Notes: generated by a model not told the origin, from the sequence alone. A DNA stretch of 39,597 nucleotides from Klebsormidium nitens (GCA_000708835.1 DF237213.1:37585-77181); one strand, 5' to 3'. Shown: positions 3,806-27,645, counted from the first letter of the stretch. Program-made: numbers and translations.

Positions 3806-4753
3806 NNNNNNNNNNNNNNNNNNNNNNNNNNNNNNNNNNNNNNNNNNNNNNNNNNNNNNNNNNNNNNNNNNNNNNNNNNNNNNNNNNNNNNNNNNNNNNN
3901 NNNNNNNNNNNNNNNNNNNNNNNNNNNNNNNNNNNNNNNNNNNNNNNNNNNNNNNNNNNNNNNNNNNNNNNNNNNNNNNNNNNNNNNNNNNNNNNNNNNN
4001 NNNNNNNNNNNNNNNNNNNNNNNNNNNNNNNNNNNNNNNNNNNNNNNNNNNNNNNNNNNNNNNNNNNNNNNNNNNNNNNNNNNNNNNNNNNNNNNNNNNN
4101 NNNNNNNNNNNNNNNNNNNNNNNNNNNNNNNNNNNNNNNNNNNNNNNNNNNNNNNNNNNNNNNNNNNNNNNNNNNNNNNNNNNNNNNNNNNNNNNNNNNN
4201 NNNNNNNNNNNNNNNNNNNNNNNNNNNNNNNNNNNNNNNNNNNNNNNNNNNNNNNNNNNNNNNNNNNNNNNNNNNNNNNNNNNNNNNNNNNNNNNNNNNN
4301 NNNNNNNNNNNNNNNNNNNNNNNNNNNNNNNNNNNNNNNNNNNNNNNNNNNNNNNNNNNNNNNNNNNNNNNNNNNNNNNNNNNNNNNNNNNNNNNNNNNN
4401 NNNNNNNNNNNNNNNNNNNNNNNNNNNNNNNNNNNNNNNNNNNNNNNNNNNNNNNNNNNNNNNNNNNNNNNNNNNNNNNNNNNNNNNNNNNNNNNNNNNN
4501 NNNNNNNNNNNNNNNNNNNNNNNNNNNNNNNNNNNNNNNNNNNNNNNNNNNNNNNNNNNNNNNNNNNNNNNNNNNNNNNNNNNNNNNNNNNNNNNNNNNN
4601 NNNNNNNNNNNNNNNNNNNNNNNNNNNNNNNNNNNNNNNNNNNNNNNNNNNNNNNNNNNNNNNNNNNNNNNNNNNNNNNNNNNNNNNNNNNNNNNNNNNN
4701 NNNNNNNNNNNNNNNNNNNNNNNNNNNNNNNNNNNNNNNNNNNNNNNNNNNNN
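3806..4753. other. Assembly gap (948 N)
   Basis: Run of n characters. Confidence 1.
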
Positions 4754-5116
4754 GCTCAGATGGTCGAGCCATTGTCTCGTCGCCCTGCCAGCGCTGCCAT
4801 GGTGGTCGAACTAGCGCATCTTATGGTGTCCACGCTGATCCGTTTGCCATTCGCAGGTCTAGGAGTTTATCAACTGGACAAGCACGGCCATGCTCACTGG
4901 TTGCATAACGTCATTGCATGACAACTTTTGGAACCCTAACCTACCTAGATTGTCCAGTCGGTGGCACTTTGAGCTCGTCTGGCGCGCCTCCTTGAGTATC
5001 CAGTGTTTGGGAAGTGCTGCCTCTTCCGCAGCAGAGCGTTCGAGCTGGGCACCGGCACTTTTTCGCTCCAGCTCCAAGTTGCTGACCCCTGTCCCGCCAA
5101 CTGTGGAAGGGCCACG

Positions 5117-18875: not shown

Positions 18876-21800
18876 ATGATGGAGCACGGCGGCAGTTCTT
18901 CGAGGTTGCGCTCTTCCCAGAGTGGTGGCTTTCGCGCTGGTTCCAAGGCCACCCATTATGGACATGCTCCTGGTGTCAGCTCGCTGTCAGCCACCTCGGG
19001 GCGGCCCAGTCAGATAGGCGATAGGGAATTGAGCAAGCATGCTCCAATGTCTGCAGCCAGCTCGGCAAAGGCTTCACAACCTGCTGCTTCCAGCTCTGGC
19101 AGTCTTTCTTTCGAGCAAACAGCGGTGGCGTGGACGGATATCGAAGCTGGGGAGGCTGTCGGCTCAGAGGGGCCTGCGCAGAGCATCGCACAGAGTATGA
19201 GGAGAATGTTTCCCCCTGCACAACCACCCGCTCCGGACAACCAACCTGAACTGTTACAGTCAGCTGTGAGTCGGAGGCCAGCCGGGAATGGGGAGGAGTT
19301 TATCATGAGTCCATCGCCACTAGCCATCGCACTAGCCAAAAAAGGCTCCTACTCAAGCCCAGCCGACACACAACCAACAGAGGTAGCAAGCTCTAAGAAA
19401 GGCTCAGGAGCTGAGCAGAGGTCGCTGGCGCCTGCTGGTAGCAGCAGGAGGGCACGCTCAATGCGTGAGGCCAGCAACTTGAAGTTGTCTATTGGGGCTG
19501 ACCATCAAAGCATGACTACTCAGAATGACCGACAAGAACCTTCAAAGGCGTTCAGTCAGAAGAGATCGCTGCTAGATGCACCACTCGCTCCCACTATTCC
19601 TGCCCCCACACATTCGTCGGAGTGGCCCTCGTTGCATTCTGGTGCCAGGCCAAGATCGAACAGTGGTCTTTCAGAGCGCCATGTTGCACCACCAAGTGCG
19701 AGTCGGCATGGTACAGCAGCGTCGTCTTCAGCAGAGCACCCCACGTTGCAGCAGGGTCCCCCTCAGCTGCCATCTGCAGCCCGCGGCTTTGCTCCTGGAG
19801 AGCAAGGAAGACCAGGCCCCATGCACGGGATGGTTGCGGTGCCCCCCATCTTGGCGGAGTGGGTGACCTCCCCCGATGCTGCGGATGTGCTGGCCAAGAT
19901 CCTGGGAGTGGCACGCGCACGCCTGCGGGGCGTGGAGCAGAACGCTGTGCGGTTTGAAGCAGAGGAGGAAGAGGCGGTGCAAGAAGCGCAGGGGCTGCTG
20001 CAGGTGAGACCAAGCTCAAGTAGATAGAGTCAGAGAAGTTACGCAATCTTTCCAAGAGCAGCTTTCTCCTCAAAGTCGGAGCGTCTCAATCAAGTTTGGC
20101 AAACCGCTTGCACTGCTCTTTACTGCATTATGCTTGCTCCTAGTAATGGTCGCATTTGGATGTGGAGCACGCCATTTTTAATATGTGGGGGGTTAGCCCT
20201 TCGCCCGCAGGCTAGATGTGGAGCATGCCAATAAGAACTGTACAGACACCGGTGGTGAAGGTGGTCGGATGAAAGGCTCAGTTCCGGTCGTTTCCTGTCT
20301 GCTGTGTAGAGCCATTTGGATCACAAGGCGGGCGTGGAGGAGAAGCGGCGTGTAAAGCGCGAGCTGGAGCTGATTGAGCAGGAGTTCAGGGACGGGCTGC
20401 GCTGTGAATTCCAGGTCCCCCTGCAAGCGCTGCCCCATGTGTTTGGCGTAAATGGCAGCAACCTGGCGCAGGTGAGATGTTGTTGGGGGGTGGTTGCATT
20501 TGAACCTGGAGGATGGGTACTGAGGTTCTCTGCTTGCATACTCCAAACGATTGAGTGTAATCACAGTTTGACATAGGTTCATTCTTTCCAAACAAGTGGC
20601 ATTGTTTGCACGCTCCAAACTTTCACAATGCTAAGTGAAGTGCCTATCATCAGTCTCCTGCCTTGGGGCAATATTGTTGGGGAGCTGATTCTGAGGCCCC
20701 TGTTGTTGTCTGGCCCCCCCAGGTGCAGGCGGAGTGCGGGGTGGAGCGCGTGCTGGTGGACTCTGACGAGAGCATGGTGCGCATCGTGGGGCGCTCCAGG
20801 GAGGCGGTGGCCGCGGCGCGCTCCCGCCTGGAGTACGACGTGTGGTGCCTGCCAACGGCGCGCGACCTCTTGCAGAGCAGTGGCAACAAGATCGAGGCCC
20901 TGCTGGAGCGCGTGCGCACCAAGAACAAGCTGGCGGAGGCAGAGGTGCAGGAGGACGAACAAGGCCCCTGGGTAAGAGGCGACCTGGCACCGTCATATAT
21001 GCAATCAATTCAGCTACGCTTGGGGCTGAGCCCTCTGCAGTGAAGCTTCGGATTCCCAGTGTCTCTGGCCTCGCTGATGGCCTTCGTTTTGCTGGTGCAA
21101 CTCCTGTCCCCCTTGACGGCGGGAACAGAAAATCTGCTGAGTTTGCCGAATTTTACAATCCCTGCTGGCTAGAAGATGACCTGAGCGGGGTGGTGGCCTG
21201 CAGGTGAGCCTGGTGGGCTGCAAGGCGGTGTTGGCGGAGGCAGCCCGTGTGGTCGAGGGCCAGCTGCAGCTATTCGAGATGATGCAAGCAGAGGTATGGT
21301 GTCCTTGTTCCACCATTGACGGACTCTCGCCTTCCCCATCTCAAATGACAGTTGGCGGTCATGCAAGCACTTTCTGGAATGGGCGACTTTCTTTGACAAC
21401 ATGTTAGAAGCCTGTGATACTTCCAGTTATTGCCGGGCAGCTGTTTTCGACCTTTTTTGGGCCAATTCGTGCTTCTGTTCTTGTGGTTTTAGGCAACTTC
21501 TCACATTTGGTGTTTCTTGTGCAGGCCGCTGAAGTTGCTGACGTCAGCGAGGAGCAGGTACAGCGGGTCAGCCGCACCTGGGGAGTGCAGCCCCGCTCAG
21601 GACCCCCTGCAGGCGGGCCGCCCTTCTTTGCGGCCCCTGCCCGCTTGCCGGCCAACACAGCAAGAGCCCCATCAACCGCGCAGTCCCGGGAGCCAAGGGC
21701 GGCAGCACAGGCAACGACTGGCGAGTGGGAGGACATTGAACCCCCATTGATGGGTCCAGATCAGAAGCATGCATCGGGATGGGGGTCGCAGACTGGGAGC

Positions 21801-24800
21801 CCGGGGCAAGGGCCGGCGGGGAGCGCAGCACGTCCGACTCAACTTGCGCGGTTACAGCCAAGAACGGGAGCAGGAGCGGCAATGGGTGCAACCTCCAATG
21901 GGGTCGTGGACGGGACCGCGGGTGTTGCGCCCACAGGGTGGGGCCAAGCTGCAGCAGGTGGTCATCCTGGGTCGACAACTGGGCACCGGACTGGACCTGC
22001 ACTCGGACAGGGTTCCCTGCCAGCTGTCAGCCAGCCAGCGCGTGAGGCAAGCGGTCCGACTCAAGTGGCGGGAGGGTCTGGTGGGTGGGGAGAGGTGCCG
22101 GCGTTCCAGCATGATGTTCGAGGAGGGGCAGAGCCACGGATCGTAACCCGAAGGCCCCTCGCGGCGACCCCGAATCGGCTGGCCGCCAGCGTGCTGGCCA
22201 CTGTTGTGAGCTCACGCCAGAAGGAGGGGGCACAGATCAGCAGGGGCAGAGGGGGTCTGGGGGCATCTCCGGAGAAGGGCGGTCGAGCAAACAGGAGCGG
22301 GGCGGAGGGAGAGATGAAAGGACGGGCGACCGGGGGTCAGATTGCGGCAGCGCAAGGAGCGGAGCAAGATTATCAGGGGAGCAGCCTGGGCGCGCGTGAT
22401 GAAGAGCCCCCTGGCGCAACTGGCTGGGGGGACACGCCAGCTGCAAACAGTGGGGGACTGCAAGTCGAGCGGGGCAGGGGGCAGATCAAGGAGGCGGCAG
22501 CCGAGAGCGGGTTCTGGACGCTGGGGTCCCCTCCAGGCGCCACCCCCGCTCCCCCGCTGGACCAGGAATCGGTCAAGAGCACCTGGGACGCTGCCTGGCC
22601 CAACTCTGCCGTCGCAGGGCGCACCAACTGGGGGCAGCAGCGGGGGCCCGAGGGCCAGACGATCCTGGAAGGGAGGGGATCCGCCCAGAGAAGCGGCCCG
22701 CCCGGTCCTGCCGCCCCCGCGCCCCTCCCTGGGCCTGCGGCCAGCTCTGAGCATGCCTCCTCGGGGTGGAGAGGGCAGCCGCGCTCGGCCGCCTCAGGGT
22801 CTCTCAGCTCGTCTCAGCCGGGGGCCTCCATCAGCAGGGGCGAGCCCAGCACCGCAAGCTCGGGGCCTGCCCCGCGCCGCAGAGTGGAGAGGATCAACGC
22901 CAACGCGGTGCCGCCCCCTGACGTGTCCACTCTTCTGCGCGCTCCGTCCGGCAAAGCGGGCGTTCGGCCCGTTCTTGCTGCTCCCTCGTCGGCTCCTGCT
23001 GCGGCGGAGCCACTCATCAGCAGGAGCGCGGCCGCTGGGGCTCCTAGCAGGCAGCCAGGTGCTGCGCCGCCAGCCAAGGCCCCCGCGTACAGGCCGGAGG
23101 ATGCGGTCGTTCTCGTGACTGCCAGCGAGGGGAGCGGCTCGGGGCGGGTACCTCCCCAGAGCAGGCCTCTCATCGGCCGGCCTAGCACCACCCGGTCTCA
23201 GCCGCAGGCACCCAAGGCGTCTCCTGTGGTAAGCCTGGAACGGGAAGCTCCCCGGACACCTGCGCAAGACGTGCGGTCCGCCAGCCTGCCCAAGGCTTCC
23301 GGTGCCTCCAAAGGCAGCGTGTCGGAGCGGCCTGAGCGGAAGGCGCTGCTGCGGGCGGTGTCATCGGCGTCGAGCACAGGCAGCACCAGCAACTCGAAGC
23401 TGGCAAACAGGGGACAGGGGGAGGTCGCGGGACGGGGGAACGGGCCAGGACAGGTGGCGCCCCTGGGAGCCTTCCAAGAGGATACGCAAGAAGGGGCGAA
23501 CAAGGAGGCCCGACGCTTGGAGCGCACGCAGGAGGAGGCGTCCCTGCCAGAGGGGAATCAGGAACAGGAGGGAGAGCAAAAGATGGTCAGTGGAAGTGCC
23601 GAAGGGGCGCACGATCCTATGTCAGCGAGGGTGCACGCTGGGGCGAAACAAGAAGCTGAGGGTAGAGGCGCTTCCGTGAAGTCGGTACGGGGGAGCGAAG
23701 TGGAGCCGCTGGGCCCGGCAGAAGTGGCGGAAGCGCGGGATGCAGCACCGGATGCTCCAGGGAGAGGTGAGAGAACCGAGCGGACGGAGGCTGCCACACT
23801 ACGTGGCCAGGACGGAGAGGAGGGGGCGGTCGCTGGCAGCAGCGACAGCGATGGAGTGCAGGCAGTCGAGCAAGGTGAGGCCGCGACCCCCGCAGGTGGC
23901 ACCCCTGCAGGAGACAAGGACAAGAGCGCCACAGGAGGGCCAACGAGCGAGTGCGGAGCCGAGGAGCAGCAACCAGCGGCGGATGCAAAGGAACCGGTAG
24001 AACTGACCCCCAGGGGCAGTGCGCCAGACTCGGTATCCCCGGGCTTTGCTACGGGTACATTTCCGGCTTCTGCGGCTGCGCAGCTACTAAAGCGGTCCAC
24101 GCCCCTTCGTGCTGAGGCACCGGAGTTTGTGGCGGGGGCCGCACGAGCGTGGTCCCCCCTTCGAGCTGAGGCCCAAGTCTTTGTTGCAGGCGTGGGGCTG
24201 GTGGAGGACCCTGCCGCATCGCACGGGGCCTCAAGAAATGCAGCTTGCCCAGGCCCGAAGGCAGGAAACGAGAGCAAGGCAAAGGACGAGGCGAGAGGAG
24301 AGATCAACGGGCGGAGCGGGGGTGGGCAGACCCGCGCGCGGAAGTGGGCCTCAGAGACGAGCGAAGAGGAGCAGCGTTTTGAAGAGGGGCATGCTGCGCA
24401 GCACGGGGCCCCGCAGGGAGAAGGACCGACGAGAAACGGCCACGAAGAGGTTGCTCGGGAGGAAGCCGCTTCTGTAAGTCAGCAGGGACGCGTTGCTGGC
24501 GGGCCTTCGGGGTGGGGCGACGCGAAGAAGCCGGAGGCGGAGGAGAAACCGTCAAAATGGGGGACAGCGAATCATGTGAACGGAGGCCTGGAGGAGGTGG
24601 AGGACCACCCGTTTGCGCAGAGGACGGGGCAGGGCGCGCGGCCGGAATCCGGCATGCGGCCGTGGTCAGACGAGGCGGCGGCTCCGGCTGCGCCGCGCGG
24701 CAAGGGCGCGGGCAGCGGTAGCTGGGTGAGCGACGACTCGGGGAGCGTGCGCAGCGTGGGCGTGGACGTGGGCCGCTGGGCGGAGGAGGCGGCCATCAGC

Positions 24801-27645
24801 ACGCTGTCGGAGCACGAGGCGCTGCTGCACGACAGCCCGCACGGCTTCGAGGGCGCCACCGACAGCGGCAGCGGGCGCGGGGGCAGCACGGGGAGCAGCC
24901 GCGCGGGCAGCAGCGAGGGGCGGCGCGGGCCGGTGTACCGCATGAAGATGCAAAAGTTCCAGCTGGCAGCCATCAAGGCCAACCAGGTCGGGGGGGGGCC
25001 GCCCACCGGGTGGGAGGCCGTGCCCGAGGAGGGGGCCACGCCGGGGAAGGGCCTGCCAGGCACCGAGCCAGGTAGAGATTAAGACTTACTTTAATATGCC
25101 AGAGGCTTGCTGCAGATCTCCCTGAGCATCTCACGTGTCACTCCCTAGTCTATCACTTCGTGGTTAGCGTACCCACACCACTGTCCCATGTCTCTCTTTG
25201 TTTGGCGGTTGCTAAAACCTCGTGTTCAGGGGGAATATACACCATAGTTTTCGGGTTCCCTTCTACGCGTCTCCTTTCGTGGTGACAGTGAAATGCTCGA
25301 CTCATCGAAATTTGCAACAGGCACTTTGAAGCCCGTCTGACTCGGGTTGTTTCTCCATACAGGCCCCTCCGTCGCCACTGACGCGCCGCCTGCTGCCATG
25401 CATTCCGAGCCTCAGGACGTCCGTGACTGGGTGCGCCCCAAGCTGAGGCCGGACAGAGCAGGCCCTCTGTTGGACACTCCGGGACCCAGCAGGTCAGACT
25501 GCCGGCTTCTGATTGTCACCCGCTCATGCAGTCTTCCGTTAACATAGACTCTAAAGAGTCCCCCAATATTCTGGTTTGTGTTTTAGAATGCGTCGCCCTT
25601 CTCCTGCTTCCGTAACAGGTTCATTTTTCCGTGCCTCGTCCATCTCGTTCTGCTCCCTGTTCGTCAGCGTTGTGCTTGTTCCAGCTCCACCCAAGCTTAC
25701 CCGGCCCACTTTTTGCAGCAGGCGGCACTTGCCGGTGCCCGTTCGTGAATCTTTCCTGTTTCCATATTCACAGTTCTCCTGGTCCAGTCGCCTCACTCTT
25801 GCGTCTTCTTGCAGGCGGCTAGCTGTGCCCCCTGCCGCAAGAGCGCCCCACAGGGCAGAGCCCGAGAGGCAGGACCGGCCGCCTGCGCCAGCTCAGCCCA
25901 CAGCCGCAGATGAAAGAGCAGAGCCAGAAGGGGGTTTTCCTGCAGAAGAGGCAGTCCGAGCAACGGGATGGGGTGATGCGGAGGGGGCAGAGCAAGAAGC
26001 GTTGGCAGGGACTGAGGAGGTCGAGGCACGTGGTTGGACCGAGCCGCCACGAAGGCGAGAAGAGGCCAGCAAGGCAGGCGCGCACCGGGGGGAGAGGCGC
26101 GGCGGCAGGCTGGACGAGAGGGCGCGATCAGCCGAGGTGTACAACGAAGCGAACGGGGGTTCAGCTCAGGAGACAGACGTGGCGGTGGGAGCGGAAGAGC
26201 CCGGGGCGCCAACGGGGTGGGGAGGCGACGTGGCGGGGCCGTCGGCAGTGCAGAGTGAGCCGAAGGCGTACCCTCAGGATGAGAGGGGAGCATCAGGGGG
26301 CCTGGGTGTCGCGGATTACGCCGAAATTAGCGAGGAGCGCGAGTATGGCATGGCACCGGCAGACGAGGCGCAGCCAACCGGCTGGCCGGAAGAGGGGAAG
26401 GCCGAGCGGGGAGGGCCGTACGAGGGGCACACAGGCGTTGCGGCTGGCGAAGCCACGAGAGAAGACCCGCACGCTGACGTCAGCATGGAGTACGAGGAGT
26501 CGTGGGACGGCGAGGATGACGCAAGCGCGTCGGAAGCGGAGAGCTCTCCTCGGGGCGGCTTGCAGAAGGCGCCGCTTCGGATTGGGGCGCAGGACGTGCG
26601 GCTGGTGGAGGGGACGCTGCCGGCCACAGCGCTCAAGCGCAGCACCGTCAATCCGACGCTGCTGCCAGGGACACAGCGCGGCGCGGGGCAAGCGCAGGAA
26701 GCGGCGAGCCGCATGGAGGTCGGGGTGCAGGATGCACGGCTGCTGCCCGTGGAACGGTCAGAGAGGCTGGAGAGATCGGGACAGCGCAAGAAAAAAGACC
26801 GGAAGGGGAAGGGGAGCAGGGAGAAGAAGGAGCGGAGGCGCGAGGAGAGGAGGCTCGAGGAGAGGAGGCGCCGCTCGGGTGGTTCGAGAACGCCGCAGGG
26901 GGCCTCGCCTGGCGGGGACCTCAGCGAGAGAGGCGTGCTACCCGGTCCTTTGCGGCAGACGCCCGGTGCCAGTGGGAATAACACGCCGTCGCCGTCCCGA
27001 GTTCCCCCCTCCGGGTGGAATGCGGGGGGGGGATCCCCGGTGACGCCCGCCAGCATCCTGCAGGCCGTGGAGCAGCCGAGCCCCGGGGGGCGGAGCAGCC
27101 GGCTGAGGAAGGAAGGAGGGGGCAGGGGGACCAAGGAGCAGGCACAAACAGCGAATGAAGGACGGACTTGGCAGGACGCGGCAGAGGCGTCCGTGCAAGA
27201 GCGGGCCAGCAATCGCGCAGGTGCATCGTTGGCAGCCGACACGGAGGCGGGCATTCTGGGGAAGGGCGGGCCGGTGGCGCCGAGCAGGACGAGCGAGGAT
27301 TGGCCGCGGGACTCCACTGGAAGACGAGCCAGCAGTCAGCGCCGCAGTGCCGGGAATGCACAGGGTACCCAACCCGATGCCGCGAGAGACGTGAGCCAGG
27401 ACAGCAGCCACCTACAGCGAGAAGAGGGGTCGTCCCAAAAGCGCGAAGTAGGCAGCGTTGGAATCGAGGCAGCGGGGGGGGGCAAGGAGAGCGACGCTGG
27501 GGGGGCCGGGGGTGATGCAGACAAGCAGAGCAGTGGCAGCGGCGGGCAGCGCGGCAGCAGTGGCCAGTCAGCCAAGCGGGCGGTCCGACCGTCGGGAGTG
27601 TGGTCTGTGCGAGATAGGCGAGGGACGTCGACCAGTTCTGCGTGA
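18876..27645 (+). CDS. Very large (~2,378 aa) RNA-binding scaffold: FMRP/FXR-like KH0-KH1-KH2 module plus long disordered GW/WG-rich tail with two PAM2-like motifs, 7 exons
   Basis: Exons 18876-20003, 20310-20471, 20723-20971, 21204-21293, 21525-25071, 25363-25492, 25815-27645; all GT-AG and phase-consistent (7,137 nt). KH1 reads EFQVPLQALPHVFGVNGSNLAQVQAECGVERVLVD...VRIVGRSREAVAAARSRLE (GxxG = GVNG). Confidence 0.8.

Follow-up and report, generated by a model that had tools for sequence, protein, structure and literature searches.

The window analysed here, a stretch of 39,597 nucleotides from Klebsormidium nitens (GCA_000708835.1 DF237213.1:37585-77181), contains the seven-exon gene KFL_002640140. 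Judged by its sequence, the product is an RNA-binding protein that combines a KH module like that of FMR1 with a disordered tail some 1,800 residues long, and the tryptophan (Trp) residues of this tail, about 15 of them in GW or WG motifs, are the subject of this work. The coordinates of all features, counted from the first nucleotide of the window, are collected in Table 1.

The exon model is based on open reading frames (ORFs), GT/AG splice signals, the deposited protein and conservation in orthologues. Exons were analysed singly, and wherever a joined protein sequence was needed the deposited one (P0001, 2,054 amino acids (aa), named 'K Homology domain-containing protein') stood in. This protein is 100% identical to the gene of the window over the shared parts, including exon 5. 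The deposited model removes two in-frame GT..AG stretches, 19266-19751 (162 aa) and 23877-24191 (105 aa), both of which stay open and are conserved at the protein level in the orthologous contigs L001 and L003; they are either an annotation artefact or retained or alternative 'exitrons'.

The FMR1-like KH module

The KH module follows a helical region encoded by the last part of exon 1. Pfam recognised KH_1 at P0001 aa 189-248 (E 9.7e-7), the only match above the cut-off in the N-terminal 420 residues, and in a phmmer search of solved structures the top matches were the KH1-KH2 unit of FMR1 (2qnd, E 9e-5, running from KH1 into KH2) and FXR1 (2cpq, E 5e-4). The order of KH1, KH2, helix and Gly/Arg-containing disordered tail is that of FMR1, FXR1 and FXR2, but the identity to this family is only about 30% (E about 1e-4) and the KH2 of K. 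nitens is reduced. The FMR1/FXR family has tandem Agenet/Tudor domains at the N-terminus; Pfam detected none in exon 1 or over aa 1-188 of P0001. FMRP tails are not rich in Trp motifs, whereas the Klebsormidium tail is, and it is also several-fold longer.

An exhaustive HMMER search with the KH module returned 153 proteins at E<=1e-3. Those with the full module measure about 270-860 aa, contain 1-7 Trp each and come from marine and other eukaryotic metagenomes and transcriptomes, and the relatives P0008-P0065 are 24-35% identical over about 220-250 residues (E down to 7e-18). Pfam finds only one KH_1 in the K. nitens protein and two KH_1 stretches in nine of ten relatives scanned from among the best. 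In their alignment (A4) the sequence xxxWG[ED], xxxWGEE or FGD comes immediately behind KH2 and its helix and leads into an RGG-rich tail. The order in the family is an 'ELLxW' helix, KH1, KH2, a helix, an aromatic-Gly-acidic site and an RGG tail. A GW-rich tail was found in none of the KH relatives checked, the tails of which are RGG- or basic-rich. When a word search with the KH region was restricted to long proteins, the query itself was the sole match. A more distant relative of the KH exons lies on contig L004, which stops before any tail, and L005 and L006 are too short to inform the tail comparison. The module is part of an unnamed two-KH family that extends across protists and algae, an FMRP-like layout outside animals.

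Tryptophan motifs of the tail

The earlier note on this DNA had counted about 15 GW/WG motifs, ten in exon 5 and five in exon 7, with further isolated Trp in small or polar contexts. All 15 are present in the frames and exons given there, and 13 more Trp were found, with small, polar or acidic surroundings. Of the 51 aromatic residues in the tail, 28 are Trp. Among all residues of the tail Trp accounts for 1.6% and Gly for about 15%, and GW/WG peptides cover 2.1%. Exon 5 holds two Trp clusters. The N-terminal one contains GEWEDI, GFWTL, STWD and AAWP besides the GW/WG types SGWG, TGWG, GGWG, TGWG, NWG and SGWR, and the C-terminal one consists of RKWAS, SGWGD, SKWGT, RPWSD, GSWVS, GRWAE and PTGWEAVPEE. 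The first motif of the exon, the TWG at 21579, is the ancestral aromatic-Gly site of the KH family and no lineage-specific hook; the others belong to a tail known so far from the Klebsormidium lineage only.

In 20,000 residue shuffles of exons 5 and 7 together, GW was expected 4.1 times and observed 12 times (P=3e-4), WG 4.2 and 10 times (P=5e-3), GWG 0.6 and 7 times, and [TS]GW 0.6 and 10 times (P<5e-5 for each of the last two). Plain adjacency is over-represented about 2-3 times and the extended context about 15 times, with WG weaker when exon 7 is taken alone (2 versus 1.4). Each of the five other frames of the same DNA contains 0-1 [TS]GW and no GWG, and the tail, with 1,791 residues, has six [PA]TGW versus one in the 61,646 six-frame codons of the remainder of the window. 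DNA repeats were considered as a source of the motifs, and no direct or tandem repeat explains them.

Perhaps motifs of this kind arise by chance, as a compositional by-product of Gly-rich, GC-rich low complexity, or the long ORFs are not coding at all. The GC content of the region (60-70%), the abundance of Gly and a plain GW/WG adjacency of merely about twice the expectation would all suit such an origin. The earlier note had named a GW frequency no higher than the Gly content predicts as evidence against its reading, and the observed frequency exceeds the shuffles; together with the frame control, this led us to reject a compositional artefact. The comparison with orthologues points the same way.

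The orthologue set comes from four sources of a single lineage. A word search with exon 5 found three relatives, the fragment P0002 (73% identical) and the proteins P0003 and P0004 (40-41% identical in the BLASTP search table and 43-46% when aligned), and a word search with the conserved C-terminal part of the exon gave the same orthologues and nothing further. The same series of exons is present on the contigs of the relatives, L003 (Logan assembly) and L001/L002 (JGI metagenomes). P0003 keeps 17 of the 19 Trp of exon 5 versus 43% of residues overall (Fisher P=5e-5), which makes Trp the best-kept residue of the exon, all other residue types being kept at about 50% or less. Identity is 59% within 5 aa of a Trp versus 39% elsewhere. 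The exact spacing from one Trp to the next is often kept (4, 11, 15, 18 and 23 residues), even across diverged spacers: the gaps of 4, 11 and 23 residues in the N-terminal cluster are identical in the orthologue, and in the C-terminal cluster the 15 residues from SGWG to KWG are kept over a spacer that has diverged.

Exon 7 behaves differently, with nine Trp in K. nitens, eight in L001 and only four shared. The gains of L001 at other places (PTGWGAG, GGWTG, GEWER, SSWQ) offset the losses, which indicates turnover with the number of Trp kept. Counted back from the Trp, the core shared by both lineages has G at -1, preceded by T or S (-2) and P or A (-3), each 3- to 7-fold enriched; Trp is followed by G in K. 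nitens and mostly by E, A or D in L001. Unconserved Trp were the other outcome that the earlier note had named as evidence against its reading, and this comparison too is in favour of the note: the Trp are conserved, by position in exon 5 and by number in exon 7. The spacers hold many conserved blocks.

The dN/dS ratio of the tail is 0.33-0.44, with dS saturated (about 1.6) towards L001, which shows a protein-coding tail that is moderately constrained. Retention of the exon 5 Trp despite such saturation, and orthologous ORFs in at least three other sources, leave an origin as a by-product of composition or of non-coding ORFs hardly credible. The Trp of the tail are very probably functional linear motifs, and [PA]-[TS]-G-W-[G/E/D/A] would represent short linear motifs under selection that presumably serve in docking.

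A second class of Trp, W-[TE]-D-I-E with acidic flanks, was noticed in AVAWTDIEAGE (exon 1, 19131-19133) and TGEWEDIEPP (exon 5, 21726-21728). Both copies are kept in L001, which is about 40% identical, as MEWVDIEP and AEWEDIAP. The acidic W-x-x-I pattern resembles the ATG8-interacting (LIR/AIM) motif.

Disorder and other elements of the tail

AlphaFold predicted no folded domain from the alignment of exon 5 (mean pLDDT 33, three short helices) or from that of exon 7 (mean pLDDT 42). Two of the short helices of exon 5 were predicted at aa 1082-1102 and 1137-1154, in the region of the C-terminal Trp cluster, and exon 7 has a long charged helix at aa 314-354 and another of lower confidence at aa 440-476. 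The alignments were shallow, so that these predictions are supporting evidence only; together with the composition they fit an intrinsically disordered tail. The spacers are rich in Ala, Pro, Glu and Arg. Pfam gave no family at E<=1 in exons 1, 5 and 7.

Between the Trp clusters of exon 5 lies a Trp-free middle region (pLDDT about 30) with the conserved blocks NANAVPPPDVSTLL, SEGSGSGRV..PLI and VSSxSSTGSTSNSK. At its end are two PAM2-like copies, which fall within the stretch 23877-24191 spliced out by the deposited model; a single copy, LRAEAKVFVAG, is retained in P0003 and P0004. The copies match the Leu, Ala and Phe of what we take to be the PAM2 pattern, with its final Pro replaced by Ala, and Pfam detected no PAM2 at this element at E<=10. 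PPTGW and PPSGW were also weighed as possible ligands of GYF domains, which have PPG and then a hydrophobic residue; this was rejected, because one residue stands between PP and G.

In exon 7 a 15-nucleotide tandem repeat (26828-26871) overlaps the stretch of the charged helix, a possible nuclear localisation signal or coiled element that is shorter in L001. The C-terminal end of the protein is nearly invariant in all three orthologues and the sequence adjacent to it has diverged. Outside the gene, the 1-kb bin at 4001-5000 has a GC content of 13% versus 43-71% in the remainder of the window; inserted AT-rich DNA, a simple repeat and the filling of an assembly gap are possible explanations.

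Table 1. Position of KFL_002640140 and its features in the window
Feature	Position	Strand	Basis or remark
KFL_002640140, whole gene, 7 exons	18876..27645	+	ORFs, splice signals, deposited protein, same exon order in L001 and L003
Exon 1	18876-~20003	+	ORF and GT/AG signals
Exon 2	~20316-20473	+	ORF and GT/AG signals
Exon 3	20723-~20971	+	ORF and GT/AG signals
Exon 4	~21205-21296	+	ORF and GT/AG signals
Exon 5	21525-25071	+	ORF and GT/AG signals
Exon 6	25363-25492	+	ORF and GT/AG signals
Exon 7, stop included	25815-27645	+	ORF and GT/AG signals
KH module, FMR1/FXR-like, exons 2-4	20316..21296	+	Pfam KH_1, solved-structure matches
TWG (SRTWG)	W codon 21579 (21579..21581)	+	Exon 5, first motif
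Exon 5 N-terminal Trp cluster, 10 Trp, 6 of GW/WG type	21726..22769	+	9/10 kept in P0003/L001
SGWG	W codon 21780	+	Exon 5
TGWG	W codon 21939	+	Exon 5
GGWG	W codon 22086	+	Exon 5
TGWG	W codon 22425	+	Exon 5
NWG	W codon 22629	+	Exon 5
SGWR	W codon 22767	+	Exon 5
Trp-free Ser/Pro/Ala-rich middle, ~460 aa	22770..24149	+	Invariant columns of alignment A1
Two adjoining PAM2-like copies, LRAEAPEFVAG and LRAEAQVFVAG, with ARAWSP between	24105..24191	+	Sequence
Exon 5 C-terminal Trp cluster	24345..25013	+	7/7 Trp kept in P0003
SGWG (SGWGD)	W codon 24513	+	Exon 5
KWG (SKWGT)	W codon 24558	+	Exon 5
TGWE (PTGWEAVPEE)	W codon 25011	+	Exon 5
Exon 7 GW motif span, 5 motifs	25969..27018	+	3/5 kept in L001
TGWG (ATGWGD)	W codon 25969	+	Exon 7
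RGWT (ARGWTE)	W codon 26035	+	Exon 7
TGWG (PTGWGG)	W codon 26218	+	Exon 7
TGWP (PTGWPE)	W codon 26383	+	Exon 7
Predicted Lys/Arg/Glu-rich long charged helix, exon 7 aa 314-354	26755..26877	+	AlphaFold, pLDDT up to 92
SGWN (PSGWNA)	W codon 27016	+	Exon 7
Conserved C-terminal end, RPSGVWSVRxR..TSTSS	27589..27642	+	Invariant columns R591-S608, alignment A2

Candidate partners of the motifs

The partner that we propose for the motifs is Argonaute, tentatively and at somewhat short of an even chance. Most likely each Trp would insert into a Trp-binding pocket of the Argonaute PIWI domain, and the several motifs of one chain would connect the mRNA targets of the KH module with one or several Argonautes loaded with small RNA. 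The protein would then act as an adaptor in the manner of GW182 or AIN-1, with the PAM2-like element and the other conserved blocks as possible effector sites. Animal FMRP and dFMR1 associate with Argonaute complexes. In K. nitens, Argonaute genes of the AGO1/5/10 and AGO4/6/9 types are present (PMC7994812), and NRPE1 is reported to be missing (PMC4476159). The Trp context, the disorder, the conservation and the turnover of the tail match the known behaviour of Argonaute hooks (PMC4615383, PMC4476159).

The plant platforms of this kind, the C-terminal domain of NRPE1, SPT5L/KTF1 and GTB1, likewise carry GW, WG and GWG in a disordered, non-homologous region, and NRPE1a of Physcomitrella has less than 2.5% hook peptides and no repeats (PMC4476159), as does the repeat-free tail described here. 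Plant platforms differ in being richer in Gly (21%) and in Ser, Asn and Asp, and in being attached to a polymerase or an elongation factor instead of a KH protein. We re-implemented the plant composition matrix of Karlowski 2010 (PMC2910046, Table 1), setting the drop-off to 8.6 and the cut-off to 6.99 half-bits, which 12 of the 14 seeded segments reached. Nine of the passing segments lie in exon 5, where the shuffles gave 3.9 (P=0.0025).

Several results weigh against Argonaute as the partner. The passing segments all scored 8-21 half-bits, in the 'weak' class, and none of the 12 merged into a medium or strong domain, whereas functionally proven platforms reach the medium and strong classes, above 25 half-bits (PMC2910046). 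Exon 7 alone did not score significantly above its shuffles with the plant matrix, and the plant reference platforms are about four times as dense in Trp (6.3%). Many Trp, moreover, sit inside well-conserved blocks (EFWTLGSP, RKWASETSEEEQR, GSWVSDDSGSVRSV, RWAEEAA), and in this the tail looks more like a set of specific composite motifs than of generic hooks. Since the KH relatives from elsewhere have no GW tail, comparative support ends at the Klebsormidium lineage. The TRP2 pocket of plant Argonautes, one of three Trp pockets, is reported to be poorly conserved and blocked by a Trp (PMC12477606). The composition had been described in the earlier note as the recognised signature of Argonaute-hook platforms. 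This description suits the motifs, by their contexts, disorder, conservation and exon 7 turnover; it does not extend to a platform as such, given the low density of Trp, the weak, unmerged segments, the composition and conserved blocks of the spacers and the ancestral nature of the first motif.

The motifs might instead dock into another partner with Trp pockets, in the first place CCR4-NOT (CNOT9/NOT1), and the protein would then be a KH-guided repressor or decay factor of mRNA that works independently of Argonaute. GW182 silencing domains bind CCR4-NOT through W-motifs flanked by G, S or T, and the flanks found here agree with this, having G, S or T ahead of the Trp and G or an acidic residue behind. 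Enrichment, conservation and disorder serve both partners equally. A PAM2-like element between Trp clusters recalls the silencing regions of GW182, and a low density of Trp is usual in effector regions of that type. On the other hand, GWG and TGWG are seen more typically in Argonaute hooks, and the PAM2-like element is the one that Pfam did not recognise. On balance we consider CCR4-NOT or a similar partner unlikely, with much of the evidence nevertheless shared. The W-rich C-terminal parts of GW182 proteins are known to bind this complex (PMC4615383).

It is also conceivable that the Trp act as aromatic 'stickers' that condense an RNA granule around the FMRP-like protein, with no single partner offering a pocket. 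The tail is very long and by prediction fully disordered, Trp dominates its aromatic residues and is distributed along the chain, there are 31 RG and six RGG motifs, and RGG-rich tails follow the KH module in the relatives as they do in FMRP. Stickers, however, need no fixed context of three residues, and here all three residues before the Trp (P, then T or S, then G) are enriched in two lineages, with exact positions and spacings retained. This points to specific recognition, and we regard condensation as a rather improbable role for the motifs.

Among the nearest known systems, GW182/TNRC6 of animals and its functional analogues AIN-1/AIN-2 are long and disordered, with dispersed Trp that are flanked by G, S or T and better conserved than their spacers, as in the Klebsormidium protein, and the count of Trp is low in AIN-1/AIN-2 of C. 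elegans too (PMC4615383). GW182 has its PAM2 between Trp clusters, and the PAM2-like element, recognised here by its pattern alone, is placed likewise. GW182 proteins have no KH domain, whereas the Klebsormidium protein carries an RNA-binding KH module of its own. A UBA-like domain and an RRM are the defining features of the GW182 family, which so far has been detected in animals only (PMC4615383). Pfam returned neither of the two for exons 1, 5 and 7 and the N-terminal 420 residues. Word searches with exon 5, the tail having been left out of the exhaustive HMMER search, matched only Klebsormidium-type orthologues and so gave no homology to GW182, and an atlas feature search gave no usable match. 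KFL_002640140 does not appear to be a member of the GW182 family; at most it would be a convergent analogue built on an FMR1-like RNA-binding module.

A much broader proposal would be that streptophyte algae evolved a GW182-like adaptor of their own, an FMR1-type KH protein that hooks Argonaute by multivalent [PA]TGW motifs and PABP or deadenylases by the PAM2-like and other conserved elements. Such a protein would be the 'missing' scaffold for repression and decay by small RNAs in the green lineage, and [PA]TGW a proteome-wide code for Argonaute docking in Klebsormidium. We consider this a long shot.

GW182 scaffolds are held to be specific to animals (PMC4615383), and it is much less clear how the Argonautes of plants and algae enlist the machinery of repression and decay. 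An early-diverging streptophyte now yields a concrete and testable candidate for such an adaptor, an FMR1-like protein with a conserved multivalent Trp tail, and [PA]-[TS]-G-W is a sharply defined motif for peptide binding assays. Should the Argonaute reading be true, it would show that hooks can provide a hard-wired connection from FMRP-type proteins to Argonaute. With CCR4-NOT or another protein as the partner, the locus still records selected linear Trp motifs in a disordered region of an algal protein.

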